A DNA stretch of 64,000 nt from NCBI GenBank assembly GCA_021613535.1, contig CP075495.1, forward strand, positions 15,686,001-15,750,000, read 5' to 3'. The position numbers and the translations under genes are program-made. Under the pieces are notes generated by a model, which made no database searches, was not told the DNA's origin, and saw only the letters and a program-made list of their open reading frames with translations. This document shows, piece after piece, positions 9,565 to 42,310 of this stretch. Origin of the DNA: Adineta vaga (lineage: Eukaryota; Animalia; Rotifera). The number at the start of each line of letters is the position of its first letter. Within the stretch, counting starts at the first letter, position 1.

Positions 9565-11729
9565 TTATTTCGCTGTTGTTTCTCTTTCAATCAGTTGATT
9601 TTGTTTTGGTTGTAGAAATTCTTGAACAACTTGTTCAACTAATTCATCAAGTTCATCTTTTGTTTGCTTTCGAAATTGTTCATCATCAATCATTGGATTT
9701 TCTTCTGATGGATTTTTCATTGGTTTCTTTTTTCTTATTTCTGAATACCATTTAATCTTTGGTTCAGTTCCACTTGCACGTATTGTTATTTCACAACCAT
9801 TATCAAAATAAAATGTAATCATTTGTGTTGATGATGAACAAGGTAATGTTGGTTTTTTATCTTTACCATTACCACGAAGATCAGCTTCAATTCCAACAGT
9901 TAAATCACGAATACCAGTTATTTGATATTTTCCACATGATTTTGGATAAACATATTCTTCATCATCATTTCGTCCATCTTTTGATTCTTTTTCATTTGCA
10001 CCAAGATGTGATTTGATTTTATTTGAATATTGAACAAGAATTTCCGGTTCTTTCTTTTCACTTTTTGTTGTTGTCGTTTCATTCGTTGTATGTTGATCTT
10101 TTCTTTGATCATAATGTCTTAAACGATCAAACATTTTCAACATAACATCAGTTTTATTACAAATAACATAAGAATTATTATTAATATGATAACCATAAAG
10201 TAATGAAAGATGATCTAATTGTTCATATAATGTTCGTCCAATAGATTTAATATAAGCACACATTTCAGATCCAATAGCTAATGCTGATATTCCATCTTTA
10301 TCTAAAACATTCTCTGGATCACACATAAATCCTCTATAAGAAAGAATTTCAAATAACAATTATATTTTCGAATTAGATAATAACTTACATAGCTTCTTCA
10401 AAAGCAAAGAGAACATGTTTTTTGTCATTTATTAATTCATTTGATCGATTTCCTAACCATTTAAAACCAGTTAAAGTATCAATTGTATTAAAACCTTCAA
10501 CTTCTCCAATAGATTTTAAAATATGTGATGAAACAGTTGAATAAAGCATATAAACATCTTTAACATTAACATCTGGATTTCGATTTCTCCAAGTAAACCA
10601 ACGCCACCAACCAAGTAAAGCACCTAATTGATTTCCAGATAAAATTCTCCATCCAGTTTCTGATGAACCAGTTGTATCTCTTTCAGCTAATGCAAATCGA
10701 TCAGCATCTGGATCAGTTGCAATAATAAAATCAGCATGATGTTTATTTGCAGTTCGAATAGCACATTCTAATGTTTCTTTTCCTTCTTCTGGATTTGGAT
10801 ATTTCACTGTTGAAAAATCTGGATCAGGATTTTTCTGTTCATCAACTGAAATAAATGGTTGAAAATGAAATGCAGCAAATGCACGTTCAGCATATGGTTG
10901 ACCAACACCATGAACTGGTGTATAAACAAATTTTAATGGTGTTGATGTATTTAATTCGGGAAAAAAACATAATTTTGATAAATTTGACATATATAAATCA
11001 CGAATCTAAAATTGAAAAAAAAATAATGAAATGATGAAAAAGAAAAAAGAAAAATGAAACTTTTTCAATTGGATCAGACATCAATTTTGAAGTTTTATCA
11101 TTGAAAATATCTAAATTCCAAGCTTTATTTTTCCATGGTTCTAAATTTTCATCAATTGATTGAGCAATTTCAACATCTAATGGTGAAACAATTTGTGCAC
11201 CATTTTCCCAATAAACTTTATAACCATTATCATCTTTTGGATTATGACTTGCTGTAACCATAATACCAGCTTGACATTGTAATTTTTTGACAGTAAATGG
11301 AATAAATGGTGTTGGAACTGTTATTGAATCAAATAAATAAACATGAATACCTTCATGAGCGAAAAGAGCAGCAGCTAAACGTGCAAATTGATGAGATTGA
11401 TGACGTGCATCAAAACCAATTGCAACGGATAATGAATCTTTTTTATTTTGAAATGTTTTTTGTAAATGACGAATAAGACCTTGTGTTGCTTGTATAACAG
11501 TTAATTCATTCATTAATGCAAATCCACTACCCATTTTAGCACGAAGACCAGCTGTACCAAATTGAATTCGATGAGATAAACGAACTTGTAAATCATCCCA
11601 TTTTGAATTCTTTTTTAATTCTTCAATTTCTTTTCGAGTTACTTCACATTGATCCCATTTTAACCATAAATCAATTGAATTTAAAAGTTCGTTAGATGGT
11701 GAACTCGTTATTCTTTTATCAAATGACAT
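9565..11729 (-). CDS. PGM2: Phosphoglucomutase-2 / phosphopentomutase-like alpha-D-phosphohexomutase, 3 exons
   Basis: FGTAGLR, catalytic TASHNP, metal-binding DPDADR, TGFKW, FAFEEA(I)G, DKDGISA, IRASGTEPKIKWY; introns at about 11060-11006 and 10388-10335. Confidence 0.93.
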
Positions 11730-12049
11730 TTTTTTACATAAAAATTTTCTAAATAAAAATAAACTTTTTCTTATAAAGAAAAACGAAGAAGAAAAAGATT
11801 CTTCGTAAAGATTAAAACTAATCCATAACCTTTTTTTTTTCTTTAGACATAAAAACAAGACGAAAAAAAAGAATGAGAGTTATCATCATCATCTATTCTA
11901 TTCTTTTTCTTTTCATTCGATTGACTGACTCATGATCATTTTTAATCATTGGAGAAAATAAATTTGATCTTTATACAAATGAAATATGATTATAGATGGC
12001 AATATATGTCTATTTTCAAGATAATGAATTTTATTTAAATAAAAATGAT

Positions 12050-13769: not shown

Positions 13770-14913
13770 ATGTTATTAAATATTACATTAATTCTTGTTC
13801 AACAACATATCAATCATTATTTTTGTCCAATTCTGTTAATCTTTGGTGTTAGTGGATGTTTTTTTAATATAATACTTTTTTCTCAAAAACAATTTCGAAA
13901 TATTTCTTGTTGTTCATGTAAGTTTTTAATAATTCAAATAGATTTTATTTCAATTGAAAAATATTCTTTTTGTTTTTTTTCTTTTAGATTTTTTATTTGC
14001 ATCAATAACAATGATGTTTGTTCTATTAATTGGATTAGTTCCTCATGCATATTCAGCACATTATTTAAGTCTAACAGATCAAAAATCTATTGCTTGTAAA
14101 TTACGTGGTTATTTTGGACAAAGTTTTACAATGATATATCGTTGGTTAATGACAATGGCTTGTATTGATCGTTATTTTGCATCATCAACAAATGTTATTT
14201 TACGTAAATTAACAAATCAATATTTAGCTAATCGTATTATAATAATAGTAATTCTTCTATGGATGATATTACCATTACATAATTTATATTTTCTTGATAT
14301 AAAAGATGGTTTATGTAATATAATGAAAATAAATTTTGCACTTTATCATAGTTTATTTACACTTTGTTTTGGTGGACTTTTTCCTCCATTAATAATGATT
14401 ATATTTATTAAATTTATTCATTCAAATCTTCAATCAAAACAAAAACTTCGTCAAAGAAATTATTATTATTATATGAGAAAACATTCAACAGATCGTCTAT
14501 CAAATACACGTGATCATCAAGTACTTCTTATGTTATTTGTTCAAGTTGCATTTTATTTATTTACAACAATTCCTTGGATGATTTTTTTATTATATGGTGC
14601 TTTAACATATCAAATAGAAAAAGTATCAATTGAACAAAAACTAATTAAAAGATTTATTCGATATATAACTGAAATTCTTATATATATATATCCAACATTA
14701 TCATTTTATGTTTATACATTAACATCAAAAACATTTCGTAAAGAATTTAAGAATTTTATTTTTTCAATATTATTTAAGAGAAATCAACATCAAATTGTAA
14801 TAGGAAAAAAACAAGATCAATGGAAAAAAGGATATGAACAAACAAATAACAATTCTCTAATTGAAATGGATACTTTAGTCGAATTATCGGAAAAGAATTT
14901 TTCTTCTCAATAA
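13770..14913 (+). CDS. Orphan rhodopsin-like GPCR, 2 exons
   Basis: 7TM; CKLRGY, MACIDRYF, FYVYTLTSKTFRKE; intron 13918-13987. Confidence 0.88.
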
Positions 14914-24426: not shown

Positions 24427-25814
24427 TACAATATGAAATTTTGAAAAGTTCTCTAAAAAAAGACATACTACCTATGTTGAATCATTCATTCTAATTAAAA
24501 TAGAAAAAAAAGAAATTATAATACACGTTTTCTTTTTGAACAGACTATTTAAAAAGAAACAATGAGATTCTATATAAACTCTTTTTTTCTTTAGTCTTTT
24601 TTTTTTCAAAAGAAAAAGAAGAAAACAATGAAAGATTCAAGAAGTAATACATGAGAAATTACTGAAGTATAATGTTGTTTATTATTTATTAATAATATAT
24701 TCTTTGAAAATTATGTAGGAAAACAACGAGAAACATGATTACTACTAATGAATTAGCATTTCTCGTTAACTAGTATTATACATTTTGTTCTATCCTATTT
24801 TTGAGAATATACACTTAAATGTGTCATTTTCTTCGTTAATATCGAATGAGAACTATCCATGCAGAAATTCGTTAAAACTTATTACCTTACTTCTGGTCAT
24901 AATGAAAATATGTTAAAATCATGTTCTCTAAAGAGTTGTTATACAAGTACACATGACTATCTTGAATTCTTTATCATATGACTAAACTATGAAAATCAAT
25001 GAAGTATAATATCATGTCATTAGAAGATGATATTGTCAAATTAAAAACAAAAGTGATTTTCACGATTTATTCTACAAAACTTCACCAATAAAAGTTTTCA
25101 AAAAATAATCCGTTTGGTTTTAGGCCGAACATTGATATCGTACCTCATCAGGGACGAAATTCCAAATACTAGCTATGATTAAATCATACTGTAGTCAAGT
25201 AGGTAATCGACAAGTAACGTTCATCGGAAGTCGACTCACTCGATCCTAGCCTGTCACAATTTACCTGCAGATATAGTCCTATTTATATATAACTGACAGC
25301 TAATCGAGACTGTTTAAAAACTGAAACATATATTTTACTGATTTTTGAGGCAAGATATTCCACTCCTTTTTATTAAAAAAAGGTGTTCAGCACAACCCTT
25401 CTGAGACTAAAATATGGAACTCATATAGCTCATTCGCGATGATTGTAAGTTTCTATTGGAACTTCGTCTATAGTGAAAATTTGCTGTAAGGATGGGTGTG
25501 GATACGGAGGAGATTAGTTGGATAGTTGAATTCAACTTTCAAGTTTGACACTACTGCACTATTGATGATTAGAGTGAACTGGTTAATCTTAATATTCCCT
25601 TTCATCCTCCTCGTCCATATACGCTCAAGATGATGATGAGCTATTTGCAGTGTCTGAAATAATCGAGTGTTGATTGCATATTCAACTGTAAGGAACATAT
25701 CTGTGATAATTATAAAGAAGAATGAATGCGAAAATTATTATTACAATAATAAACTGGTAATTTTAATAATATAGTACAAAGTTGACAAAAATAAAATGTT
25801 TTTGAAATAACTAA

Positions 25815-26100: not shown

Positions 26101-26752
26101 GTTTAAACTATTTTTCGTTTTTTTTTCTTTCAAAGATAAGGAAGAGTTATGTTCTTTTATCTTCTTATAAATAACAAGTAACGCTCATCCGCAGGATTCG
26201 CTGACCCCTCTCTGAAAGAACTATAATGATGATTAACGTATCGATATTCTTTAAAAAACTCTCTTAAAGAGAAGAAACACTGGTCAAAATTTCTTTTCTT
26301 GATTTTATGTTTTGATTTTGTTCAGCATCATTGAAAATCTCGAGATCCACATTTTAGCGCATCTGGTTGAACGAATAAAAAAATACATCAATTTTACTGA
26401 CAACCACTCCCGAAACTATTTTGAGATTTCTCAAAAAATATAGCTAAAAAGAACGCTCATAAAATTTGCAGCTTCCGACGGAAATTCTACTGACGGAATC
26501 CAATACAGATCCGTCACCAGGAATCCGATACGATTTTGTCGGAACGTTGGATCCTATAAGATCCTATCGGATTTGTCGACCTGGAAAGAGCTTTATGAAA
26601 TTATTCGTTTAATATACTAAAAGATACAGCATCGAAAACTGAACAAAATTCTCTATTTAGATATTCTCGTTCTGTCGACCGATCGGTACTAGTCGAACAT
26701 TAAAAATACGTAAATTTGATAAATATAATGATATTAATTGTTTCTATCTATT

Positions 26753-29143
26753 CTTTGAAAGAAAAAAAGGAGTGTTCCAAAACCTTTTTGGGTTCTGCAA
26801 CATCTCCAGAACCAGAAAAAGTTCTGTATGACATATGAGAAACCAAGAAAGGTTCTGGGCAACAATTCTGAACTACAAAGGCTTTTGTCCGACAATTCTA
26901 AACTATGAAGAGTTCTGTCAGTCATCCCTTAAACTACAGAAGGTTTAGTTATTTTTCTACTGAACCTTGAAAACTCCTTCGTGAGACGAAACTGAATCCA
27001 GTTGGTTCAATAGTACAACTGCAGAACTTTAAAAAGTTCTGTTTTATTAATTTTGAACCAAAAGGGTTCTGCCCAAAAATACTCAGTTTGAAAGGGTTCG
27101 GTCTGATAATATTGAATCATAGAGATTTTTTCCTTCGACGTTACTAAATGTAAAGTTTCTTCTCTAAAATCCGCAACCTGATATAGCTGCCCCAGTGAAT
27201 GTTGGAGTATCGTAAGTTTCCTCAACTGAAGAAGAGAGTCACACACTCAAAAAATGTATATACGTTCATTTGTTCATGCAAGTCAACAACAATTTAACAA
27301 CTTTCTTTTCTCTTTTGAGTTTTGTCATAACAAAAAACGGAAATGCTTTGGCCATTTCAAGTTGTCAATAACGATCTTAGGTATGAACTGAACAACTTAA
27401 TGTTTTGCATCGACGATGGTGGGAGTCCACTATCAGTATATGATTATTCCAAGCAATTTTTCAGTCATCCAAATCTGAGGGAGGTTTTTCTCTTATTACT
27501 TACATGTAACAAAATCATGTTCAGGCCAGTTACAAGTTAACAGAGAACGACTCTAATATAGCTCAAACTAACTTATATGTTATGTCAACAATAGAGGGTA
27601 GGAGTTGATCAGCTCAAGTCCATGAACTCTGATGAAATGAACTAAAGAACTATTCAAAAGTTTATCATTTCACCGAGCTCAATCTTTTAAAAATATTCTT
27701 TACAAATAAAATGATCTTTTTCAGCGGTTCCTCTATTCGATTATGTAGAGATATCACGCAGTCATCAACTGATAGTATGTAGGGGTATTTGTATACCCTT
27801 GAGCATAGAAGATATCTTTATATAATGAGACTAGCAGACAGGGACGGGCTGAGGATTTTATAATACTCGAAAACTTAACTTCAAAGCATGGGTCCCGCAT
27901 GAAACTTATGAAAGATGATAAGTGACCCAAATGGTGACTTTTTACCAAAGACATTTTGTGATTGAAGTTTGCGAAAAAAAATTCTTTTAATTGCTACACC
28001 CAACTTTTGTTTTTGGTTTAAGCAGTACTCAGATTCTTAGAATGTTATCGGAATCTACATCGAATTTCATCCACAGATTTCAAATCTTTCAGAAGCTATC
28101 AAGAGATATATTCAATACGACTTGTTCAATCCCTCTTTCTATTCGGACAGCTTTCGAAACTAAATATCAGTCCCTGATAGCAGCAGATATTGAGAAGGTC
28201 ATAGCTTTTAGCGAGAATGTTTATGTTATTATATTTAAAATGAAAAACTAAATATTGTGTTATCATTTAGGTTCATATTGATGTGTGAGTAAAGGTGAGT
28301 TGTATTTGAAATATGATATGAAATATTTCTTATTGTTGTATATTGATACATATCGATATCTGATTAAGAGTAAGTAATATTTCAAATACGAAATGAAACA
28401 TTCTCTATTATCATTTATGTTTGTATAGATATGTGGGTACAAATGAGTTATTTTCAAAACAATATGTTAAATATTTATTGTTATCATTTCGGTTCATAGC
28501 CATATCTGATTAAAGTTGAGTGATATTTTGAATTTTAGATTAAATATTTTCTATTGTCATTTAGATTCAGATCGAAGTCTAACGCAATGTGACTTTTATT
28601 TTATATAGAAAACTAAATATTTTCTTCTTTCATATTTATACCGATCTATATTGCAGAGAAATGGTAAGTGGGATATTAGAAACAAAATAGTAGAATGATT
28701 TTCTTTTTATATCTAGGTTGATTTGTACACGTATTCAAGTACTGCAAGTGCGTCTGTTTATATTACAAGGTCAAAAACAGACTGAGAAAGTGAATTAGGT
28801 TAGGGCTGAATTGAGCCAATCGGCAGCAAGCAAAAAGCGTGATTCGACTGTAGCTTAATTCACTTTTTCGGTCTATTTGAGAGCTTAACATAAACAGACG
28901 CACTTGCAACACTGGAATATGTGTACAAATCAACCTAGATATAAAGAGAAAATAATTTTCTGAAAAACCATTTAACACACCTTTTATGTCAGACTGAACC
29001 TTATTTTTGTATAGAATAATGAAGAGTTCTGTTAGGTTTTAACAGAACCCTCTATGAGCCAGAACATTTTTGTGGGTTCTGAATTTTACCAGCGGGCAGA
29101 ACCCTCAAAAAGGTTCTGGAAAACTCCTTTTTTATTTTCAGAG
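26753..29143. mobile_element. Non-autonomous TIR DNA transposon, CMC/EnSpm(CACTA)-like, 2-bp TSD (TT)
   Basis: Left end CTTTGAAAGAAAAAAAGGAGTGTTCCAAAACCTTTTTGGGTTCTGC matches the reverse complement of the right end (CTCTGAAAATAAAAAAAGGAGTTTCCAGAACCTTTTTGAGGGTTCTGC); many subterminal GGTTCT/AGAACC motifs; removing it plus one TT restores the host codons AAA GCC AAT AGA. Confidence 0.8.
28271..28663 (+). repeat. Degenerate 73-75-bp tandem repeat with the architecture of six 24-nt micro-exons and 49-51-nt introns
   Basis: 24-nt units at 28271, 28346, 28419, 28492, 28565 and 28640, each preceded by a T-rich tract ending AG or a 1-nt variant and followed by GTRAGT or a 1-nt variant. Confidence 0.65.
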
Positions 29144-31749
29144 TTGGCTTTCATGCATCTAATATCTGATGCGATGAATAAAATTTCAATAGAAGGAAAA
29201 TGATTGATAAAAAATTGTTCAAAAATATCAACTGCTTCGGATTTGAATTTAAAAGATGCATATGTCAAATTAATCAACATCATGCCATATAAATTTGGTT
29301 GTGTAGGACCATATTGACGTAATAAATTTGCTGATAAATAACGAAATTATGGAACACACGATAATAAACAAATCAATTGATTACAATATATTGAATTATC
29401 AACGATTAAATATTCCATTGAGCTATATGAGAAAGTCATAATGTATTGTGTATATTTCGGAAAGTATAGAGGCAATTGATCTCAAATTGTGTCGAAGGAA
29501 AATAATATGAAAGTGTTCCACAATAGATTTTTAATGTTGAGAGAATCTGAAATAAAACATAGTTTCTCGTAATATTAACGTAAGATACGATCAAATGAGA
29601 ATTAAATAGGTTTCGAAAAAAACAGTCGAGTATTCCAGAAGGTCTTCTATTGTAAACCTAGATTTACATAAATGAATAGACAACACTATTCTATAGAAGA
29701 ATAAAATAATAGGGATCTATCGAAAACGATAATGAGAAGGATATATCACATGATGCTCTAAACAAATATTACCTTCAAAGACAATGATCAAAAAAAGATT
29801 AGAACACTTATGATAATTAAATGAAAATAGAGTTGCTCTAATAAATTTTTGCTTGTCTATAAATAAGAAACAAAATGAGTAGAAATATAGATGAGATTTA
29901 CGGAATGTTCATTTTTAATTTTGTTCTCATTTCGTAAGTCTAAATATGGAAGTTTTTTTTTATCTCTTTTGCCATGAAAGTAGAAAAGAAAAACTTCTTC
30001 TACGCAAGACATCAACATTATTATTTGTTTTCATTAGAATTTAAAACACTGAAAAAAGAACAAACAATCATATACTCTATAATTTTGGTCAAAATGTATA
30101 TGTTTTCTGATAGAAGACAAAGTTTCTATCCGGAAACATCAAGTATTAAAAAAAAAGAAAAAGAGTTTATTGAATTTTTGTATGGATTCAATAGTTATTT
30201 ACCTAATTATGACAATGGATAATATCCGTTTACAATCGATTATTTTAAAATTTACAAGTTCGTCTTTCGAATGACGTTTGATAATGTATTCATTTTTATC
30301 TTGGTTATGATGCAACACTCGTTTGAATTCTCGTTGTTTGGATGCTGTGAAATTGTTCAAAGGTTATAGGTAACTATTATACGAATTCGATATTTTTTAC
30401 AAATATATTTAGAGCATTGCAATCAAAATTGATTAAATCAAATCAAACAAAGTTTATCATTAATTTTGTTATCTCTGTTCGACTAATGTTAGATATTATT
30501 TGTTAATTCATGTCAGATATAATCCTATCTTTGTTAAAATACCAATATTATATGGAAGAAAATTTCCATTTAGTGTAAATATGACAATTATATACTTCAT
30601 CAATATATTCATAGTCAAAAAGTCAGTGATCAATATGCCATTGGTTCAATGAAACAAATGTCATGATACATGCGTCGATGGTGTATTTTAGAAGAATCTT
30701 CATCACAATCGATGAATTCAGAAAGGCAGTTCACATTGATTTCTCAAATAAACAAAATCGTCATATTAGATAAAGAAACTATTTTGGGTGTACATTCAAC
30801 AACTAAATGTTCATTATCATGTGTAATTATTTGAATACACAGCATGAAAAACTTCGATAGATCTAGTATAGCCGGTTTCATCGACACCGATGCTGAATAT
30901 ATTCAAAAAGAAATATGTGTAAACTTAAGACAGAACGACTTTACCACTCGCGAATTTATCATACTCTTGTGATTCTCAGAATGATAATGAATAGGAAGGG
31001 ACTATAAGTACGGGTCACTATGTAAACATGAAACACTCTTTGTGTTTACAAGTGCATTTCGCCGTCTTTCATTGACACTCAAATATATCGGAAGCTGCAT
31101 CCAGATGCGATTTATATCCTTAATTGTGTCTCTACACATTAGTTTGTTGAGACTGAGATACACTCCTTTCTCTAAAACTTTCTTTTTTATCTTGAAAGAT
31201 GTACGAATACAAAACATTTTTCTATCATTAGACATCAAACGTCAAATCAAAGAAGCAACTAAATAAAGTTGTCAAACTCGTCATCCACTTTATCTTGCCG
31301 TCAACCCCAACTCTCTATTATGAGAAATATTCAAAATAAAGTTCGAAAGAATATTTTGCTACGTTTTCACGCACAACAGAATGTTTAAGAAATAATTTCC
31401 CAGTCGTTCCTACTAGATCAGCGATGGGAATAAATGCAGCGGACCCATTAAAAGGCTCATAAGACGCATCAACGGTCGTCCTTCTTCTTTATAACCTTTC
31501 CACTATTGAAAAATTTTCAGAAGACATTATATTAAGAGTAGACACTTTCACAAAATATCATATGATACCCATCAAACTTCAACTAATAAACTATAGTGCA
31601 TTTTAAACATGGGATTTCGCTATCTCGGACATACACAAATCAACAACTTAGATCATAGACACATCTCTCACGGCCGGAAATCAAGAGCTTAAAACAAAAC
31701 ACGTTATTGTACGATCAATACGACTTCGAAGCACACTGTGTATTCATTC

Positions 31750-34700
31750 CTAACCACATCGGTTTCCTCTAAAACAATTCCCAGAAAAGGGAACTAAAAA
31801 ACAATGTCCCTCGAATCCCAACAACAACGTTAACCTATTTCCAAAAGTATTTCGGAGATACTTTCTTTCTTGAGCACCAATTTGATTGTCCTCCAGATTT
31901 AGTGTGGTGAGTGTCTACATAGCAGAGAGAGTATGGATGTGTCAATTAGGTCAAGAGCAAATGAGTACTACCGTGTTTGTTCGCAAGGCATCACCAATAT
32001 GTTGTGCTCCTTGATCGCCGATTTGATTGTATCGCAGATTTAGTGTGGTCAGTGTCTACATAGCAGAGAGAGTATGGATGTGTCAATCAGGACAAGAGCG
32101 AATGAATATTACTGTGTTTATTCGCAAGGCACCACAAATATGTTGTGCTCCTTGATCGCCGATTCCATTGTTCTCGAGATATAGTGTGTTAAGTGTCTAT
32201 AGAGGAGAGAGAGCATGGATGTGTCAATCAGGACAAGAGCGAATAAATATTACCGTGTTTATTCGCAAGGCACCACCAATATGTTGTGCTCCTTGATCGC
32301 CGAATCGATTGTATCGGAGATATAGTGTGTTAAGTGTCTATAGAGGAGAGAGAGCATGGATGTGTTAATCAGGACAAGAGCGAATGAATATTACCGTGTT
32401 TGTTCGCAAGGCATCACCAATATGTTGTGCTCCTTGATCACCGATTTCATTGTCCTCCAGATTTAGTGTGGTGAGTGTCTACATAGCAGAGAGAGTATGG
32501 ATGTGTCAATTAGGTCAAGAGCAAATGAGTACTACCGTGTTTGTTCGCAAGGCATCACCAATATGTTGTGCTCCTTGATCACCGATTTCATTGTCCTCCA
32601 GATTTAGTGTGGTGAGTGTCTACATAGCAGAGAGAGTATGGATGTGTCAATTAGGTCAAGAGCAAATGAGTACTACCGTGTTTGTTCGCAAGGCATCACC
32701 AATATGTTGTGCTCCTTGATCGCCGATTCCATTGTTCTCCAGATTTAGTGTGGTGAGTGTCTACATAGCAGAGAGAGTATGGATGTGTCATTCAGGACAA
32801 GAGCGAATGAATATTACCGTGTTTATTCGCAAGGTATCACCAATATGTTTTGCTCCTTGATCGCCGATTTGATTGTATCGCAGATTTAGTGTGGTCAGTG
32901 TCTATAGAGGAGAGAGAGCATCGATGTCAATTAGGACAAGAGCGAATGAATATTACCGTGTTTATTCGCAAGGCACCACAAATATGTTGTGCTCCTTGAT
33001 CGCCGATTCCATTGTTCTCGAGATTTAGTGTGGTGAGTGTCTATAGAGGAGAGAGAGCATAGATGTGTCAATTAGGACACGAGCGAATGAATATTACCGT
33101 GTTTATTCGCAAGGCATCACCAATATGTTGTGCTCCTTGATCGCCGATTCTATTGTTCTCGAGATTTAGTGTGTTGAGTGTCTATAGAGGAGAGAAAGCA
33201 TAGATGTGTCAATTAGGACAAGAGCGAATGAATATTACTGTGTTTGTTCGCAAGGCATCACCAATATGTTGTGCTCCTTGATCGTCGATTCGATTGTATC
33301 GGAGATTTAGTGTGTTGAGTGTCTATAGAGGAGAGAGAGCATGGATGTGTTAATCAGGACAAGAGCGAATGAATATTACCGTGTTTGTTCGCAAGGCATC
33401 ACCAATATGTTGTGCTCCTTGATCACCGATTCCATTGTTCTTCAGATTTAGTGTGGTGAGTGTCTACATAGCAGAGAGAGTATGGATGTGTCAATCAGGA
33501 CAAGAGCGAATGAATATTACTGTGTTTTTTCGCAAGGCATCACCAATATGTTGTGCTCCTTGATCACCGATTTCATTGTCCTCCAGATTTAGTGTGGTGA
33601 GTGTCTACATAGCAGAGAGAGTATGGATGTGTCAATTAGGTCAAGAGCAAATGAGTACTACCGTGTTTGTTCGCAAGGCATCACCAATATGTTGTGCTCC
33701 TTGATCGCCGATTTGATTGTATCGCAGATTTAGTGTGGTCAGTGTCTACATAGCAGAGAGAGTATGGATGTGTCAATCAGGACAAGAGCGAATGAATATT
33801 ACTGTGTTTATTCGCAAGGCACCACAAATATGTTGTGCTCCTTGATCGCCGATTCCATTGTTCTCGAGATTTAGTGTGTTAAGTGTCTATAGAGGAGAGA
33901 AAGCATGGATGTGTCAATTAGGTCAAGAGCAAATGAGTACTACCGTGTTTGTTCGCAAGGCATCACCAATATGTTGTGCTCCTTGATTGCCGATTTGATT
34001 GTATCGCAGATTTAGTGTGGTCAGTGTCTACATAGCAGAGAGAGTATGGATGTGTCAATCAGGACAAGAGCGAATGAATATTACTGTGTTTATTCGCAAG
34101 GCACCACAAATATGTTGTGCTCCTTGATCGCCGATTCCATTGTTCTCGAGATTTAGTGTGTTAAGTGTCTATAGAGGAGAGAGAGCATGGATGTGTTAAT
34201 CAGGACAAGAGCGAATAAATATTACCGTATTTGTTCGCAAGGCATCACCAATATGTTGTGCCCCTTGATGGCCGATTTGATTGTACCCGAGATCTAGTGC
34301 GGTGAGTGTCTATGTATAGAATATTCCTTTCGACAATGTGAGTAAAGAAATCTGAACTTTAGAGTAAGGTTTTTCAATTAGATATAGGATTATACAAGAG
34401 GTGTGGCTGTAGTGTGTGAAAGTGTTCGATCGGGTTTCATGGAGTGAAAAGAGAAATCGGTGCTTGTCTGATTATTACTGAGTTAATGTTGGAATCGTCG
34501 AATGAGTGGAGTGAGTACTGTACTGAAGGTAGTGATACTTGTTGATTTCGAATGGTTTTGGATTGTTATTTTTAGATTTGGATTGCGAAAGATCGTATGG
34601 AGTCGGGGTAGAATATAAAACAGTTCAGTTTATTTTGTTCGGTGGGTGTCAGAGATAGTTGTGGAATTGTTTAAGAGTTGCAATAGGGACATTTGTTTGA

Positions 34701-35117
34701 AAAGTGAAAGATGTTTCAATGCTGCGGTTTTATTCTTGTGCGGCACATGAGTGCGCGTTGAATATGATATATATTATATGTGCATAGATAGAAAAGAACA
34801 GGTGAGAGGAAGTGTTGTTTTAATAGCATGAGTCAATATTGTGTTTGGTTGACTCGTGTGAATTGCTTCGGAATTGTGAAATTTGTTTTTTCTTTGAGTA
34901 AACTGATTAAGTTAGATATTGCGAGGCTCGTGTGTGCTTGAACAGATGAGAAAATAGGTAAAGCACTTTGCAAACTTACTTGATATGGATGATAAATGTT
35001 CAGAATGTGATTAAAACGTTGGCAAACATTTTGCATTGAGCAAAATAGTGTAAAACCAGACAGATGATCCAAAATTCGATAGACCAGTTCAATCGGTAAT
35101 GTTGAAAATGTGTGCAT
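31750..35117 (-). CDS. F-box protein with 17 single-LRR exon cassettes plus a terminal LRR exon (RI/NLRC3-like 28-aa repeats), about 576 aa, 19 exons
   Basis: Exon 1 (35117-34980) MHTFSTLPIELVYRILDHL...NVCQRFNHIL is an F-box ending phase 0 at GTAAGT. There are 17 stop-free 84-nt exons, consensus TLTTLNLxxNxIGDQGAQHIGDALRTNT, all with intact GT/AG. Terminal exon 31914-31750; its 3' end is less certain. Confidence 0.9.
31881..34312. repeat. 141-bp tandem array (84-nt exon + 57-nt intron), about 17.2 units
   Basis: Exon lower bounds 31972, 32113, 32254, 32395, 32536, 32677, 32818, 32957, 33098, 33239, 33380, 33521, 33662, 33803, 33944, 34085, 34226; one intron (32902-32956) is 55 nt. Confidence 0.97.
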
Positions 35118-37921
35118 ATTCGCTTTAAATTCCATAAAATTTTGTTGAGAATACAAGCTATTGAATATATTCTGTTTGTTATGAAAAGAAATTCGCTTTA
35201 CTGATAGTATTGTATTATTGTTATTTGAAAAAGATAATGAAATCTGATGATTTCAACAAAAGCGAATAGCTCGTTTATGCAGAAAGATGGCGTTAACGTA
35301 TGTATTGAGTGGAGTTTCGTTTGACGTGTATGATTATCAGTGTCAGTATACACTCAAGATACGTATTTTTCATCAGTAATTTTTTGAGTTTTACAAAGGA
35401 GTTCGTTTTACGAAAGGATATTTTTGCATGTGATATTCAACAAAAGTTCAATCAGAAAAGGAAATCTTTGAGGGTAGATACCGATACTCTCTACTTTTCA
35501 CGCTCACGCTTCATACCCTCATAAACTAATTTCATTCTATTAGTTCGACGTAAGGCAATTTTTATTTCAAACACGTCTATCCTTAAAGATCTTAACAAGA
35601 AAATTAATTGAATTAAAGAAAACAAAATCGGTTCATCTTATCGTGATGTGTGAGATAAATTTTTTGTATGAACAATTGCTGGTGTATCAAATATTCTCAA
35701 AAGCAAAAGAGAACACATGAAATTATAAACTAAGTTCGAGTCTGACTCTCACCCGAGTTAACTGACACTGTTGCATGCCTATGCCATCGTATCTCTAAGA
35801 TGTTCTTATATGATTTGCTTATTCCCCTACGTTTTTCATTAATTCCAATAGTGTTCAAACTAGACAAATTTAACTGTACTTTATTTTTCTCAAACCTGCT
35901 ACGGGTTCGATTCTACCTATGTGTTCATTTATTGAATTATCATCTCTAGAATGATCAATAGTTTCTATGTAAGTATTGCTAAACTTTTAATGATTTTATG
36001 AATAAATAACGACCGACTGATTGTAATCTCATATTATATCTATCGAAAGCGCGTACTTACCTCGTACTGAAGGGTAGAGCAATATTTTGATCTTGTGCAG
36101 CCTTTAACTTTTAACCCTTGATCCTTCACATTGATCCCACCTATCTATCATCCTGCCCTTAATCTACTCTCGGTTTCCGATGTTTAAGACAGTCTTTAAA
36201 AAAATGTTTTTTCGATCTTTGACACTGACACAAAAGCGCACAGAAACTTTTTTTCCATATGACGCTCCTTTCTGTGGAAGGAATAAGGTGTGGGTGTAAG
36301 TGTTCCTTGACAGAGTACGCACATACATACATCCACACAAGGGGAAAAGGCCGATCCGGGATCCTCATAGTTCCTGCGATCACACAGTTCATGAAGACCA
36401 ATGATAATCCAAGAGTATCTTTCAGGATTCACGAGCGTCAGCCTTTTTGAGATGCCAGGATTTATGGAGAGCCATGAGAGTCCGAACGTTTTATAGGATT
36501 TGGGTATCCAGGATCCGCTTTTTCCCCCTTGCAGACCCACACCCTCAACTTCAACTGAAAAAACATTTCTTCAATGAACCCAGTAGCTTTATTAAAGAAT
36601 TCACAGTCAGAATTTTTTTGTTTTATGCTTAATAACAGGTTATTTTCAGTTTCGCAATAATTATAATAATTGATTAGAATTATGAAAAGCTAACATCAGA
36701 CTTGAAATCCTCGACTTCGATTACTTTTGGGTAAATCATATAAAGATGATTATTAGTAAATTTTCATGAATTTTTATATAGCTGCAATCTGACTGGATTA
36801 GACAAATAAGAAATAGCAATTAATTAATTATGGTTCATAGAAAAATATTTTTGAGAAAGGAACCCAAGATTCATATTCCTCGATCTCGATTCCATATGAC
36901 GAATCGTTGTCCGATGACAAGGGGTGAGTTTTCATCGATTTATACGCTGCTTTCACTTGATTGGCTTGGACAAACAAATAAACTTTAAGCATTTTAACGA
37001 CCCCATTTAAGAAGCATATAACCCTTTCTTTCAGAAAAGGGAACAATGTTTATTTTGTCAGTCTTGAGATCACTACACATAGAAGTATTGATGTAATAGT
37101 CTAAAAGAGTATTCGTTATTATTTACGTAATATATTAAATTTATTGTACACTTACAGAAGACATTATTTAGATAGCACCCATTGCAAGTATACCAGTGTT
37201 GAGTTCGCTTAATTTTGCCTCGATAGACGTAAGTCTACTATCTACATTGTTTGATGAAGCATTGGACTGTGATGATAGTGGTGAACGAGAATCATGTCCC
37301 AATGTACCAGCCATTGATTGTATGTCATGTTCGGCAATTAATTCATTTTGATTTATCTGTTCGATTTGTTCGTTAACATCACCATGAGTTTCATCTGGCA
37401 TGATAACCAATTTACCAGTAGTGTCAAACTCGACAGTTGAATTCAACTATATAACTATCCAAATTATCCAAACTTTTCAATTATCCAAACTATTCATTTA
37501 TTCAACTATTCAAACCAGAGACCGGCGGGACAAGGGTTTTTCTGTCCCGTCCCGTCTTGTCCCGCCTCCTACGAAAAATTTTGAACAAGATATTTTAAAT
37601 AAACAATCATTAGCTTAATATTTTTTCTATATATCATTATTTATTTTCAAACTATATCTTATTATATATTTCCACAATGAATTTGCTCTATATGATTGAA
37701 AAATATAAATTCATTCGGACCTATAAATAAAATCTGAGAAACTTCTATTGCTACTACAGAAAATATTGTAACTATCGTTCGTGTAGCAAATATAAAAAAT
37801 ACAAGCGGTTGATAAATTTACGGGAATAAAAAGATTCAGTTTTTTTTCATACAGACCGTTTTGGAAAGCTCAATGAGCTTTATTGAACTATATAAGAAAG
37901 ATCACAATAAAACTTTTATTA

Positions 37922-39627
37922 CCCAGGTGCATGAAAACGGCTACATTTACGGTATGTAGACGTTCCGTAAACGTTTTAAAAACGGTATCTTTACGGTATG
38001 ATACGGTATCAATTCGGACCGTTTTTGGTCCGTATCGAACCGTATTTTCAGGCACAGAATTACGTATCGTAATGTGTCCGTTCAGTAAACGTTCCGTATT
38101 TGGTGGTTTTCTAGGAATTATCGGATAGCAGACGGTAGTATGTTTTACACCATATTGAGGCCGTTTTTGACCGAAAATGGGCCGATTTATATCCGTTTAC
38201 ACGAATCAGTATCTGTCATCTCCACAATAACTTAATTTTAAATCATCCACCTCATTTATCAATAGCTCTTTGAGTTTGCTTCGAACTATAGTTAGACTTT
38301 ATTATCATGTTCAATATAAAAAAACAATAACAACAAAAAACAATATCCAGGACGAGTAATCCGGTTTTCAGATCCGACGGAATCCTGTTAGATTCTCATA
38401 ACTAAGCTAGATATCGTCTGCAACATGAACACTTCACTCGTCATTTTATTATATCTAATATATCAATCGCCCATAGTCTGATTGGATGACTGAGTTTTAT
38501 TCTCATGGTGTTCTTGTAATGTATCAGGAAACTATGATTTTTTTACCAACTATGGTACTCATATACGAGCTCGTATACGAGTACTGTAGCTGGTGAAAAA
38601 ACCATATTTATCTGACACATTACAAAAACACCATCGAAACAGAAATCAGTCAGCTATAGCTAGACTAATCAGCACCACTTACTTGATTCATACTTATCAA
38701 TAATCTAAGTTTTTAAAAAATTCATTTTAAAAAATCTTACTTATTTTTCAACTAATGATTATACTCTAAAAGTAAACAATAAAATTCATTCGAAAAATTC
38801 TTACTGTTCAGTTGATTATTATAAATAATCTAAAAAAGAAAAGAAAATTTATCTAAATAAAATTCTTACTTACTGTTCAATCTGATTTATTCCATCTAAA
38901 ATTGCAAAACCAAAATAAATTTTGTCAGTAAGGTGACCCACCAATATACTCACTCGTCAGTCACAAATTAGACTAGAGAATAGATCTTTCGAAATTATAT
39001 GTGAACGAGAAAAACGAACTGACATAATAAAGATGCTTCCAAAAAACATCGAAAGCTGATTACATTGAATGTCTATAGCATCTTTTATTTCGTTAGGTAT
39101 ATCTGCCTAGACGGTTGTGAATGTACAAAAATATAAAAATATAAATATAAAAAACCTTGTGATTTACTAATATGTATTGAAATTTCTATTAATTATTTAT
39201 TATTTATATATGTATATTCGAATGTTAAGTCGTGTGTTTAACTATTTATATTTGAAGTTTTGTATAGATGGCGCCATAATTTGCACAATATATTAATTAT
39301 ATTTTTGTTCTACTTCTCACTCTCCATCTATCTAGAAAATCACTTTTCATTTTATAAAAAATCATAATATTGTACAGAATGTCATATACCGGGATCTGTG
39401 GCCTTATTAAGTAGGTTTTCAGAAAAAACGGTTTAAAAACAGGGCGTAATCTGAGTTCCGTTTTCGAATAGAATTCGGTGCTCCGTAATACGGTCCGTAA
39501 ATGGTGCGAAAAATATCCGTATTTACACCGTTAACTGCGGTCGGTATACAAAAAAAATCGGAGATCCGTTTAGATGCCGTTTTTTATTGGTATACTGCCG
39601 TTTTCGGTCCGACTCGTTCGACCTGGG
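37922..39627. mobile_element. Nested TA-flanked CCCAGGT-family MITE-like element
   Basis: TA|CCCAGGT...ACCTGGG|TA with ACGG/CCGT-rich subterminal regions at both ends. Confidence 0.65.
38474..38667. repeat. Imperfect spacer-less palindrome of about 190 bp (foldback)
   Basis: Centre TATACGAG|CTCGTATA at 38569/38570; the arms pair outward through ATGGTGTT..AACACCAT and TGACTGA..TCAGTCA. Confidence 0.8.
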
Positions 39628-41213
39628 TAGATTGCATAGTTACATGTGTCTCGGTTAAAATACTTAAACGTATGATAACAACATTTATTTGCAGTTTTTT
39701 GTGTGATTTTTTTCTTATCACACTAGTTTATTCACATCTATTAAATTCTATCTTCAAAGAGTTTTTTCTATTATACAGGTGTCTATATTTATAGAGAGAG
39801 AAACAGTGATAGAAAGATAGATACATAGTACTCGCCTTACGCTATCAAATGACGAAAAAACAATCGAATCGTCTGAGATCCGAATTATCCTAACGAGAAA
39901 ATTTCCAGCAAATTTGTAATGATATTCAGAAATAGAAAAAAGTTAAAGCATGGTTTACGAGGGCAATGTGCATAACCTTAATGCGGTATAGATGTCTTAT
40001 AACAGTTTCTAGTATTTTTGTTCACGATCTTTCATATTAATTTAAAAAAACTACTGCACAAAAAGAGTTAAAGCATATGCAGTATTTTTGATATTATTAG
40101 ACTGAAATAGTTCAACTTCATCAGATAATCTAAATATATGACTCAAAACTAAAACTGAATCAAGACTTTTGATCATCACTATTTGAATAAAAACATACGG
40201 TTCTAAAAAAAGTCATTTTTTTCTTTTTGTAGAAAAATAACGAATAAATATTTAACAGATTTGGTGCAATTAGTGACCAAAGAAATATTTCCACATTGGA
40301 GATAAAAATAATAAATTAGATTATTTTCACAGATATTCTGAGAAAAATATTAGTGCGGTACAAAAATAAAAGAAATATTCCTCGCGGGACAATTCAATAT
40401 AAATTTTATCCCGTCCCGTCCCGCCGGTCTCTGATATGAAATGTCCGAATCCGAAATAATCGAAGAAGTGTTTTTCAGAAGAGTTCTCTAAAAAGAAATA
40501 TCACAGTCATTAACTTCATTCGAATTAAATTAGAAATAATATGAATCTACAAACTCTTTTTTTTCTCAATTCTATGTTTGAGAATAAAGAAAGAGAGCAA
40601 TGGCAGATTCAAGAAATATAGGACATGAAATATTACTGAGGTACATTATCATAAATTACTTGTTAAAAAGAAAACGTTTTTTTATGTTAAATTCTATGGA
40701 ATTATATCATTTGAAAATTATATAAATAAATAACGACAAGGTGATTTTCACAGTTCAATTAGTATTCACCATATGCTCTCGTTAACACTGTTCTATATTT
40801 CTGAGTACATTCATCTATAAGTTTCTTGTTTTTCTTTTTTGATGGAATAAGAATTAACGATGTAGAACTTCCTGAAAAATTGTCGCCCTGTTTCTCATCA
40901 ATTAGAACATTTATTTAGAAAATTCTAAAATATCTCTTTGAAATAATATTTCAAAGCCATGTTTTCTAAACAGTTTTCTTTTTCAAATAATAATCATTTC
41001 GAGTGGAAAAAAAACTTTTACGATTAAAAGATTAAAATTAATGAGATGTGATATCATATGACTAGAAAATTGCATAGACAAATAAAGAAAAAGTAATATT
41101 CATGAATGAGATAGTAGTTAGTACTATATTATAGGGTTAATTAGTTTTGCACATTTTTAGTTGATTTATTCTATAAAAGTTGAATAAAATTAAAAAATGA
41201 TCCCTTATTAATC

Positions 41214-42257
41214 TTAGTCCAAACATTGATACCGTACGCCATCCGGAATAAAATTCCAAACATTTTCTATTATTTTATCACTAATCCAAGTTGGTAATAA
41301 ATATAAAGCGAAAAAGATTAATTTTCCTTGCCAACCTGGTCGATAATGAATTGAAGGTTTAATATTCACAATGGCATGCTCAATTGCTCGTACTACAGTT
41401 AATGGATTATCTGCATTGGTCATAAATGGACTACGAAGTGCTTTTGTTATATTCTTTTCTAAATAATTAATTCCCCAACGTTGTTGAACATCAATTGAAA
41501 GTTCATTCCAAACATTTCTCCATGTTTGTTCATAGTTTTCCATCATTGGTGTTTTCAAAGCACCTGGTTCAATTGTACTAACATATAAATTCCATGAAGA
41601 CATTTCACGACGAAGACAATCAGAGAAAGATTTCATTGCATATTTTGATGCTGAATAAGCTGATGTATTTGGAAAAGCAAAAAATCCCGCCGCTGAAACG
41701 ACATTAACTACACGTGAATAACGTTTTGTAATTAATAAAGGTAAAAATTTCTTTGTCATCATTACATGTCCAAAAAAATTGACATTCATTATTTGACGCA
41801 TCATATCCATCGATGTCCAATCAATACAACCATGTGTCATAATACCAGCATTGTTTACTATTGCATGTAAAGTGTTTGTTCTTTCTCGAATTAAATCATA
41901 TACATAATCAATATCTTCTTGTTTTGTTATATCTAAATGAAAGATTATTGCTCGAGGAGAAAGTTTTTCTTTTAATAAATTAACATTGTCTTGAAGAAAT
42001 ACACCAGCAAGAACATGAAAACCTTTTTTATCAAGTTCAATTGCTAATAGATGACCAACACCTGTATCACAACCACTAATAAGAACAAATTTATTTTGTG
42101 GATCAATGTTTCGTGAATGAAATATATATTGATATAAACGATAAATAGAATAAAATGTAATAATTATAATAAAAATCATCTGTGTTGATTTATCACAATG
42201 AAAATGAAATGATGAATCATATTTATCAACATCTGAATGTGGTCCGATAGATAACAT
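41214..42257 (-). CDS. Short-chain dehydrogenase/reductase, RDH/HSD17B6/BDH1-like (SDR9C)
   Basis: VLISGCDTGVG, VNNAG, NFFG, YSASK catalytic motif, IEPG; start ATG at 42257 or 42179. Confidence 0.9.
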   Translation of the reverse strand: MLSIGPHSDVDKYDSSFHFHCDKSTQMIFIIIITFYSIYRLYQYIFHSRNIDPQNKFVLISGCDTGVGHLLAIELDKKGFHVLAGVFLQDNVNLLKEKLSPRAIIFHLDITKQEDIDYVYDLIRERTNTLHAIVNNAGIMTHGCIDWTSMDMMRQIMNVNFFGHVMMTKKFLPLLITKRYSRVVNVVSAAGFFAFPNTSAYSASKYAMKSFSDCLRREMSSWNLYVSTIEPGALKTPMMENYEQTWRNVWNELSIDVQQRWGINYLEKNITKALRSPFMTNADNPLTVVRAIEHAIVNIKPSIHYRPGWQGKLIFFALYLLPTWISDKIIENVWNFIPDGVRYQCLD

Positions 42258-42310
42258 TTCATAAGAAGAAAACAATGAATATCATTTGATATTATAGATA
42301 AAAGAACAAA

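Follow-up and report, generated by a model that had tools for sequence, protein, structure and literature searches.

Bdelloid rotifers are ancient asexuals, and their defences against pathogens and selfish DNA are poorly understood. Viral and bacterial F-box proteins that hijack the SCF ubiquitin ligase exist, host genes captured by Helitrons usually decay, and the germline genes of the VLR system of lampreys and hagfish are incomplete, being assembled somatically from flanking donor cassettes of the leucine-rich repeat (LRR). SCF receptors of the FBXL type, such as Skp2 and TIR1, have an N-terminal F-box of about 45 amino acids that is followed directly by an LRR solenoid, and they serve as substrate adaptors of cullin-RING ligases. 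In the lineage expansions of F-box (and MATH-BTB) genes in Caenorhabditis and in plants the binding domain is positively selected, in keeping with the hypothesis of Thomas 2006 (PMC8120010, PMC8665587), and the genes have been proposed to act against foreign or selfish proteins (PMC8120010, PMC8665587). The LRR multigene expansions of Adineta vaga have received a mention in passing only (PMC3846280), the published mobilisation of LRR genes in this species involves the pLTRs of Penelope elements (PMC3846280), and our search of the literature on bdelloid or Adineta F-box or leucine-rich repeat genes found no description of an F-box/LRR family.

The window analysed here is a stretch of 64,000 nucleotides from A. 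vaga (contig CP075495.1, positions 15,686,001 to 15,750,000). Its minus strand carries a gene (35117-31750) in which an F-box exon is followed by a 670-nt intron, 17 LRR cassettes and a terminal exon, and which is complete in the germline, with an ATG, 19 exons, GT-AG introns and a stop. Exon 1 (34979..35117) contains the start codon and the F-box domain (46 aa), and its 3' end is in phase 0. It matches the Pfam F-box profile (PF00646) at 23.3 bits against a cut-off of 20.5 (E 5.8e-5), over profile positions 1-37 of 43; its translation shows the F-box residues LP, IEL, IL and VCQRF, and the full-length relatives P0155 and P0157 likewise pass the cut-off. Intron 1 (34310..34978; 670 nt, GT..AG) lies between the GT of exon 1 and the first LRR exon. 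At the other end of the gene, a last intron of 57 nt (31915..31971; GT..AG, its sequence read directly) precedes the terminal exon (31750..31914), which encodes a partial 18th LRR and a tail and ends with a TAG at 31752-31750.

TRF detected a single array (31885-34312; period 141, 17.2 copies, 89% matches). Its 17 cassettes (31972..34309, minus strand), a number that is taken from the assembly and that short contigs could not confirm independently, each consist of an 84-nt exon and a 57-nt intron. Exons 1-6 of the array lie at 34309-34226, 34168-34085, 34027-33944, 33886-33803, 33745-33662 and 33604-33521, exons 7-12 at 33463-33380, 33322-33239, 33181-33098, 33040-32957, 32901-32818 and 32760-32677, and exons 13-17 at 32619-32536, 32478-32395, 32337-32254, 32196-32113 and 32055-31972. 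A scripted scan found that all 17 are exactly 84 nt long, flanked by AG and GT, in phase 0 and free of stops; each encodes 28 amino acids of the pattern TLxxLxLxxNxIGDQGAQHIGDALRxNT, that is, one LRR of the RI/NLR type. Sixteen of the array introns are 57 nt long and one, after exon 10, is 55 nt, so the only indel of the array is intronic. Since all of the cassettes are symmetric phase-0 exons, any subset of them stays in frame. Random substitutions at the observed density would be expected to place a stop in about 19% of exons, and the probability that all 17 are stop-free is 0.02. A preliminary description of this DNA had put forward an F-box gene with 17 symmetric exons of one LRR each and a 2-nt indel confined to an intron; the exon scan, the Pfam matches and the joints in presumed RNA agree with the gene model, and the uniform exons with intact splice sites and the lone 55-nt intron bear out the rest. 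To call the gene hidden was an overstatement, for family members have already been deposited from A. vaga, A. ricciae, A. steineri and Rotaria as LRR-containing, F-box domain-containing or hypothetical proteins.

The domain order of the gene is that of the FBXL receptors, and its product would likewise act as a substrate adaptor of a cullin-RING ligase. Unlike in the FBXL receptors, the repeats are of a uniform 28-aa RI/NLR type with one exon each, the closest folds are those of NLRP1, NOD2 and ribonuclease inhibitor, and the family is made up of dozens of near-identical young copies in which the repeat number varies. The window gene was searched exon by exon, while wider comparisons made use of database proteins of its paralogues: Pfam LRR_6 (PF13516) scored 22.1 and 26.6 bits on single exons, against a cut-off of 23.4, and 112.8 bits on the paralogue protein P0151. 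An AF2 model of six cassettes from this paralogue (P0151:146-316; pLDDT 76) alternates strand and helix with a period of 28 aa, positions 4-9 forming the strand and 14-26 the helix, and Foldseek matched it to the NLRP1 LRR, NOD2 and RI (TMq 0.8-0.92, E to 6e-10), the LRRs of NLRP1 and NOD2 lying at TM 0.84-0.92. As modelled on the paralogue fragment, the predicted fold is a curved alpha/beta solenoid. The LRR subtype, the fold and the repeat-per-exon structure are shared with the NLR and ribonuclease-inhibitor genes, in which an exon encodes one or two repeats and, as here, symmetric exon phases allow exons to be duplicated; in contrast to those genes, the rotifer introns are minimal (57 nt) and duplicate along with the exons. 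The protein also differs from an NLR in its effector module. Neither the exons nor the ORFs that were tested from the rest of the 10.9-kb unit described below contained a NACHT or NB-ARC domain and, judged by its sequence, the gene is not an NLR, its predicted N-terminal module being an F-box. We infer that the F-box would dock on Skp1 and that the concave face of the LRRs would bind proteins and present them for ubiquitination; the targets would be fast-evolving proteins, whether foreign or selfish.

It had been suggested that the genome be searched with the array unit, and paralogous arrays are indeed present: at least 30 loci in A. vaga have the same architecture, with 1-23 internal cassettes. 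The 282-bp double unit gave at least 291 matches genome-wide, at least 132 related F-box exons were found at E <= 1e-5, and homologues occur in Adineta and Rotaria species. Among the 30 paralogues the F-box is 83-100% identical in amino acid sequence, and intron 1 measures 666-670 nt at 20 of the 30 cassette-bearing loci, with 89-95% nucleotide identity in the closer copies. Cassette number runs from 1 to 23 even among copies whose flanks are 92-99% identical. Blocks within arrays reach 99-100% identity, cassettes 2 and 4 and cassettes 5 and 17 of the window are identical over 141 nt, and the closest relatives of the window cassettes occupy non-collinear positions in two other arrays (L011 and L021). 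The unit of duplication and deletion is the 141-bp exon-plus-intron cassette. The introns, described earlier as homogenised together with the exons, do match equally well, but there is nothing unusual in this because duplication of the 141-bp unit produces the same result. In the germ line, the arrays would be remodelled through unequal crossing-over together with gene conversion, and the cassette offers a simple mechanism for altering repeat number.

Purifying selection acts on both the F-box and the scaffold of the LRRs (pN/pS 0.2-0.5; 0.26 for the F-box). A comparison of 98 independent pairs of close cassettes put nonsynonymous change in the six predicted concave-face codons (positions 3, 4, 6, 8, 9 and 11 of each repeat) at 0.098, as against 0.030 in introns (Fisher p 2e-23) and 0.021 in scaffold codons, while synonymous change in the concave codons was not raised (0.039). 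Within arrays, concave pN/pS was 0.9-8.5 and exceeded 1 in 17 of the 18 computable arrays, whereas scaffold pN/pS was 0.3-0.8 in 18 of 19, a contrast that is not a formal site-model test because the paralogous repeats compared recombine. Entropy is maximal at repeat positions 8, 9, 11, 6 and 14. There is clear diversifying selection on the predicted binding face, where amino-acid change is about three times the base change in introns. Both the excess of concave-face change and the range of 1-23 cassettes among similar copies fit the earlier proposal of a fast-evolving recognition surface.

Like the Caenorhabditis and plant expansions, this is a large, species-specific adaptor family with a fast turnover and a conserved F-box, located on TE-rich chromosome arms; it differs from them in that an array of LRR cassettes takes the place of FBA/FTH as the binding domain, in that variation also arises through repeat number, and in that the copies lie inside a defined mobile unit. 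We consider it probable that the genes make up a germline family of SCF substrate receptors with 17-18 RI/NLR-type LRRs, remodelled by unequal recombination and spread by this mobile unit. The F-box/LRR family is well defined, with a signature of diversifying selection on its predicted binding face, and its members are concrete candidates for intracellular receptors that combine recognition with degradation.

The whole gene rides in a dispersed, transposon-like unit of about 10.9 kb (26174..37046, minus strand), which was missed in the first reading of the locus. Homology to the unit is found at at least 26 other loci (84-99% identity) and stops sharply at both ends, beyond which the flanks are unrelated between copies; its roughly 26 sites are scattered through the genome and lie mainly towards the ends of chromosomes, and each terminus has about 26 full matches genome-wide. 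The 1.9 kb upstream of the gene (35118..37046), the presumed promoter and 5' UTR, and the 5.6 kb of the 3' part (26174..31749) are both 92-99% identical between copies. The former has no coding signal, its ORFs of 61-114 aa being without a Pfam match, and the latter has no ORF of at least 100 aa and no recognisable gene. None of 20 ORFs (50-114 aa) from the two flanks of the gene matched Pfam at the cut-off, the sole weak match (LydB, E 0.0045, in the 3' part) being sub-cut-off and at chance level, and Rfam returned nothing at E <= 0.1. Apart from the F-box/LRR gene, the unit has no recognisable gene.

The termini were aligned from the 5' ends of 8 copies and the 3' ends of 14. In the first 89 nt (36958..37046) there is a weak 6-bp hairpin and, at nt 6-21, the 16-nt motif CCCTTTTCTGAAAGAA, which agrees at 14 of 16 positions with the reverse complement of TTCTTTCAGAGAGGGG; this inverted copy stands about 34 nt from the 3' end, ahead of the terminus itself (last 53 nt, 26174..26226). 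The motif pair is kept across copies and forms an asymmetric terminal inverted repeat. The 3' end is conserved in 14 copies, the next base is always T, and the 11 copies with both flanks show no target-site duplication and have a T on each side. The same 89-nt 5' end begins short elements of 0.9-1.9 kb elsewhere; these have the last 53 nt in common and share only their ends with the unit. Compared with shuffled sequences, neither terminal fold is significant (z -1.2 for the 5' 6-bp stem, z +1.0 at the 3' end).

Fixed ends, the lack of a target-site duplication, an inverted terminal motif, short derivatives that retain only the termini and insertion next to T are shared with the non-autonomous elements of the Helitron2/Helentron group, whose 5' terminal motif is inverted 20-40 bp before the 3' end (PMC5148889). 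From its termini, we tentatively classify the unit as a non-autonomous Helitron2/Helentron-like transposon. It departs from that group in that its hairpins are weak and no RepHel partner with its ends was found. Among the Rep and PIF1 matches of the genome there was no Rep or helicase gene bearing the termini of the unit; a match resembling the 3' terminus (C2:81289) lies 8 kb from a Rep match with no helicase match between them, and the Rep genes of A. vaga may belong to Terminons. An LTR/Penelope-type or cut-and-paste origin was rejected because the ends of the unit have no LTRs, terminal TIRs or pLTRs, and in its lack of pLTRs the unit also differs from the published Penelope case. Spy elements lack target-site duplications too, but their TIRs and their AAA|TTT target led us to reject this assignment. 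No paralogous empty site was found for the copy at C4:14587878-14599286, the flanks of which had no matches other than themselves and a partial repeat nearby.

Our observations suggest that the 10.9-kb unit copied the F-box/LRR gene around the genome, and that this transposon-like vehicle has done so with the whole gene about 26 times. As in gene capture by Helitrons, a host-like gene is carried inside (PMC6431247), although here the cargo is a whole, selected gene and not fragments; an intact gene under selection that is amplified by a mobile element would be an unusual case. Three old copies (L014, L015 and L037), with F-box amino acid identity of 83-85% and intron-1 identity of about 75-77%, still bear unit ends or unit-internal sequence, and their gene is intact and under purifying selection. 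One may go further and see in the unit a rolling-circle-type transposon whose sole and long-maintained cargo is a functional SCF adaptor under diversifying selection on its LRR face, a reading that we regard as rather unlikely. If true, the mobile element would possess a ubiquitin-ligase targeting module of its own (serving counter-defence, addiction or incompatibility); it might equally be a mobile vehicle by which host defence receptors are spread and diversified in an asexual animal.

We are also doubtful that the gene belongs to the transposon itself, as an accessory or selfish gene that would recruit SCF to destroy a host factor (for example, one of silencing) or would cause addiction or incompatibility, and whose LRR surface would evolve in an arms race against proteins of the host and not against pathogens. 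Consistent with such a role are the lack of any other recognisable gene in the unit, the maintenance of the gene in the three old copies when captured host genes usually decay, and the precedent of F-box proteins by which viruses and bacteria subvert SCF. Among proteins of solved structure, an A. ricciae homologue is matched best in sequence by the LRR domain of Ralstonia RipG4 (GALA; E 5e-46). The GALA/RipG type III effectors share the F-box plus LRR architecture, but they are secreted bacterial effectors with a repeat type of their own, the rotifer genes are intron-bearing animal genes, and the similarity is confined to the LRR part. Nematode F-box genes are central to toxin-antidote and hybrid-incompatibility systems (PMC12062965). 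Against a selfish role, the unit has no transposase or Rep and therefore depends on a partner element, at least 100 more distant F-box exons together with the F-box/LRR genes of other bdelloid genera suggest an ordinary host family that preceded the capture, and host-level selection on each copy accounts for the same data.

The support from RNA for the receptor family that we favour consists of short assembled contigs, from runs that are only presumed to be RNA and that give no readout of isoforms or levels. Exon 11, which is specific to this locus, has an 85-nt match with no mismatches and with non-intron flanks on both sides in two such runs (X2 and X3). Exon-exon and F-box-to-LRR joints occur in presumed RNA contigs and in none from the DNA run X9, and presumed RNA contigs fuse the end of a paralogue's F-box exon straight to position 34309. 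The gene is real, spliced and expressed, the RNA nature of the runs being presumed.

The preliminary description had gone on to propose a rapidly reconfigurable receptor whose cassettes can be added, dropped, skipped or swapped. Taken as a VLR-like system that generates receptor diversity within an animal or clone, whether through somatic recombination or through exon skipping in varying combinations, or as reconfiguration between individuals, we judge this to be very improbable. Interchangeable modules do make up the LRR concave face that is predicted to serve recognition, as in the lamprey and hagfish VLR genes; in the rotifer gene any subset of them remains in frame, and cassette order and number vary between very similar copies. 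The rotifer gene is unlike those of the VLR system in that its germline form is complete, from the ATG to the stop, and its splice sites are intact, its cassettes lie inside the gene with splice sites of their own, there is no sign of somatic assembly, its LRR subtype is different and its product is predicted to be intracellular. One joint in presumed RNA (33040>33239) would omit exon 9, but it is ambiguous because it is 1 nt off the normal junction of exons 8 and 9 and the normal junctions in 8 paralogues; the remaining joints (three in all) are accounted for by the identity of exons 2 and 4, and the skipped isoforms were rejected. No rearranged forms of the array are present in DNA run X9, and the genome itself already holds the diversity, in the form of about 26 or more genes. 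The findings give no support to a somatic system resembling adaptive immunity.

It is just as improbable that the arrays are decaying pseudogene cargo that owes its regularity merely to recent duplication. The copies are young (flank divergence of 1-8% in the closer ones), and the paralogues include three with a stop in the terminal exon, one with a mutated acceptor there and two defective internal cassettes; but 327 of the 329 internal cassettes across the 30 paralogues are intact, when about 19% with stops would be expected, the scaffold and the F-box are constrained as described above, and spliced transcripts are found in the presumed RNA runs. That the 17-copy array was mis-assembled or mis-sized is extremely unlikely: short contigs cannot span it, every run is without depth in one bin (32519-32635, 117 nt) and, depending on the run, 52-70% of the placed contigs fit two places, but the architecture recurs at 30 loci with differing cassette orders, 29 of the 30 bins have coverage in DNA run X9, among them those with the unique junctions at either end of the array, and the cassettes have locus-specific substitutions.

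Two smaller features of the unit may be added. Its 3' part contains a 264-bp palindrome (28694..28957) with 72-nt arms that are 90% complementary, which matches itself and the other copies in reverse. In 19 of the 19 other paralogues aligned across the position, a stop follows ...GNRLTL or its equivalent in the terminal exon; the window gene does not have this stop and is extended by 24 codons.

The evidence is best accounted for by a germline multigene family of putative SCF substrate receptors, in which an F-box is combined with leucine-rich repeats (LRRs) of the RI/NLR type and diversifying selection acts on the binding face. Cassette duplication and loss would alter repeat number, and a mobile unit would have carried the gene copies to dispersed sites. 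The anatomy given in the preliminary description for the minus-strand member in the window (35117-31750), with 17 cassettes of an 84-nt exon and a 57-nt intron in phase 0 between an F-box exon and an end exon, was right in every structural detail. Exon 1 (35117-34979, minus strand) has an ATG start, and matches the Pfam F-box model above its curated threshold; its 3' end, next to a GT, is in phase 0, with the first repeat exon 670 nt downstream. The tandem array at 31885-34312 (period 141, 17.2 copies, 89% matches), the sole array reported by TRF, was resolved by script into 17 minus-strand exons, 17 being the count as assembled. Each exon is exactly 84 nt, is preceded by AG and followed by GT, lacks stops and encodes a single 28-aa repeat with the pattern TLxxLxLxxNxIGDQGAQHIGDALRxNT; LRR_6 (Pfam) is matched by single repeat exons. 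The exons are open beyond chance expectation: random placement of the observed number of substitutions puts a stop in about 19% of exons and leaves all 17 open in only 2% of trials. The introns that follow measure 57 nt in 16 cases and 55 nt in one. A TG insertion at 32924 occurs at about 45% of depth in the DNA run X9, so the 55-nt intron also exists in a 57-nt form; this difference is a polymorphism, or it represents the other haplotype, another strain or a paralogue. The terminal exon (31914-31750, minus strand), preceded by a 57-nt intron, begins as a partial 18th repeat and ends with TAG. Within it, at 31820-31832, TTG (Leu) replaces the stop that follows ...GNRLTL in 19 of 19 other aligned paralogues, and the frame therefore extends for 24 codons to the TAG at 31752-31750.

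The window gene belongs to a large family and is not singular. In the 100.8-Mb genome assembly (six contigs) we found at least 291 matches to a 282-bp double cassette and at least 132 matches to the F-box exon at E <= 1e-5. Thirty paralogous loci that we compared have a common architecture: all possess the F-box exon (83-100% amino acid identity) and an array period of 141 (sometimes 143-147), 20 of the 30 loci with LRR cassettes have an intron 1 measuring 666-670 nt, and the terminal exon is the same wherever it can be aligned. Internal cassettes number from 1 to 23 per locus, and 327 of 329 keep an open frame and AG/GT borders. Relatives have been deposited as 'leucine rich repeat containing protein' (ADD91459.1, A. 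vaga, whose gene model runs exon 1 into intron 1), as 'hypothetical protein I4U23_011037' and, in A. ricciae, A. steineri and three Rotaria species, as 'F-box domain-containing protein'. RI-type LRR arrays like these follow varied N-terminal modules in fusion proteins among the Adineta and Rotaria database entries P0159-P0256. The heads found on bdelloid arrays of this type are F-box, B-box/RING (TRIM-like), ADP-ribosyltransferase (PF01129), NACHT and kinase/U-box. This variety suggests that bdelloids possess a broader repertoire of LRR sensors whose effector heads can be exchanged. The nearest systems in concept are the F-box expansions of nematodes and plants, for which a role against foreign proteins has been proposed (PMC8120010, PMC8665587).

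Similarity between loci extends beyond the gene to a unit of 10.9 kb (window 37046 to 26174; 84-99% identity), whose ends fall at the same positions, within a base or two, in every copy, with unrelated flanks. Each terminus has about 26 full-length matches in the genome, 18 of 26 (counted from one terminus) lying less than 3.5 Mb from a contig end. Outside the F-box gene the unit contains no ORF of at least 115 aa, no Pfam domain and no Rfam match. Older copies keep termini or unit-internal sequence together with intact arrays, at F-box identities of 83-85% and intron-1 identities of about 75-77%. That the gene has long been kept intact inside the unit speaks for a different, and in our judgement unlikely, reading in which the adaptor works for the mobile element itself, as a counter-defence or a selfish incompatibility factor. 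At one C4 locus, L021 (14587000-14596500), the 5' junction of the unit at 14587878 directly follows host-gene sequence encoding ...YQEEFREQL. The partial NCBI model I4U23_021784 (UJR34376.1, A. vaga), which contains this paralogous F-box exon as an exact match, splices the host exon with that ending onto it; the model either reflects a chimeric transcript or is an artefact of annotation due to insertion of the unit.

The 11 copies with both flanks lack a target-site duplication and lie between two T residues. Nt 6-21 of the unit form a 16-nt motif that is repeated inversely (14/16) about 34 nt from the 3' end, and the first 89 nt and last 53 nt also delimit three short elements of 0.9-1.9 kb (C4:5786281-5788164, C2:1324382-1326272 and C1:7715676-7716587). 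These traits of the unit have been listed for Helitron2/Helentrons and for the non-autonomous elements derived from them (PMC5148889), and we tentatively regard the unit as Helitron2/Helentron-like and non-autonomous. The assignment stays tentative because the terminal hairpins are weak, none of the Rep/helicase genes of the assembly compared with the unit ends could be tied to them, A. vaga Rep genes occur in Terminons too (PMC6431247) and no empty site was found from the flanks of one copy (C4:14587878-14599286). Near contig ends (for example C2:32-327 kb, C1:16.98-18.05 Mb and C3:0.23-0.87 Mb) there are clusters of genes for Helitron-like Rep (PF14214, 24 hits) and for PIF1 helicase (25 hits), often on the same strand and 3.2-3.6 kb apart, which may be Helitrons or the Rep-bearing Terminons reported in A. 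vaga. Intron-containing host genes of this species, an LRR gene among them, are reported to have been spread by transposable elements via Penelope pLTRs (PMC3846280); such pLTRs are absent from the unit. A 264-bp palindrome in its non-coding 3' part (28694-28957; 72-nt arms, 90% complementary, 120-nt spacer), conserved in other copies, may stem from an old MITE insertion or serve the unit as a structural element.

The F-box exon shows a pN/pS of 0.26 across 24 close copies. In LRRs the x positions point to a concave ligand-binding surface; assigned here by motif, the predicted concave set comprises positions 3, 4, 6, 8, 9 and 11 (the x of LxxLxLxxNx), the remaining 22 codons forming the scaffold. 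Within arrays, pN/pS was 0.9-8.5 at concave codons, exceeding 1 in 17 of 18 computable arrays, and 0.3-0.8 at scaffold codons in 18 of 19. A cleaner test used 98 non-overlapping close cassette pairs with 1-10 differences per 141 nt. Nonsynonymous differences at concave codons amounted to 0.098 per site against 0.030 in the adjoining introns (Fisher p 2e-23); the values were 0.046 for all synonymous sites, 0.039 for synonymous sites of concave codons and 0.021 for nonsynonymous sites of scaffold codons. Only amino-acid-changing differences are raised at concave codons, and a local mutation or gene-conversion hotspot fails to explain the excess because it would lift synonymous change too. The 317 cassettes examined encode 255 different peptides, among which 161 six-residue codes can be told apart, with entropy highest at repeat positions 9, 8, 11, 6 and 14. 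Exons of the window gene were analysed singly, and protein searches and fold prediction used database proteins of paralogues. An AF2 model of six cassettes of one of these (P0151:146-316; pLDDT 76) places a beta-strand at 4-9 and a helix at 14-26; this model comes nearest to the LRR domains of NLRP1 and NOD2, to ribonuclease inhibitor and to RipG4. Among known systems, NLR/RI LRR domains are the closest in fold to the family.

Window cassettes 2 and 4, like 5 and 17, are identical over the full 141 nt, and the double unit (16,17) shares 99% identity with each of (4,5) and (2,3). Nearest relatives in the two most similar genes occupy non-collinear positions (in L021, cassettes 6, 16 and 17 are nearest to window cassettes 12, 11 and 7), and the window copy is a mosaic, its upstream part 98.7% identical to a copy at C6:12.89 Mb and its downstream part 99.0% to one at C4:14.59 Mb. 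The patterns are consistent with a 141-bp exon+intron unit that undergoes unequal crossing-over and gene conversion, and with ectopic exchange among copies. Introns do match as well as exons, as first described, because the duplicated unit comprises both; co-homogenisation is thus no separate phenomenon. Cassettes had also been thought free to be added, dropped or swapped: their number and order vary, but all of this variation lies between germline copies. The proposed VLR-like system can be set aside because the germline gene is complete and nothing points to somatic assembly.

Expression data consist of short assembled contigs from public runs, X2 and X3 being presumed to be RNA. In both, a 120-nt contig contains the complete exon 11 with 0 mismatches and non-intron sequence on both sides; this exon is separated from all other exons compared by 3 nt or more. 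Further contigs join the 3' end of a paralogue's F-box exon straight onto base 1 of an LRR exon. The DNA run X9 contains none of the exon-exon or F-box-to-LRR joints. The presumed-RNA contigs support splicing as modelled, in line with the spliced transcripts expected earlier, and say nothing reliable on isoforms. An apparent skipping of exon 9 was rejected, its joint being only 1 nt from normal junctions in the window gene and eight other genes; two other apparent skip joints are no evidence of skipping because identical exons yield them.

The flanks of the unit in the window have no further genome copies at E <= 1e-30. A 55-nt inverted repeat (25515-25569 and 37403-37457, 82% complementary) brackets the unit about 0.6 and 0.36 kb out, and a small TIR element, or else an inverted duplication of local extent, may have been its landing site. 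Just upstream, 37516-40437 holds other dispersed repeats, nested: one family (about 37.5-37.9 and 39.6-40.4 kb) is split by another (about 37.9-39.6 kb), each with several copies of 87-97% identity. Ordinary host genes in the window encode a phosphoglucomutase (9568-11858, minus strand; three exons, PGM_PMM I, II and IV), a rhodopsin-type GPCR (13954-14910, plus), a short-chain dehydrogenase (41217-42275, minus) and a cytochrome P450 (42311-43987, plus).
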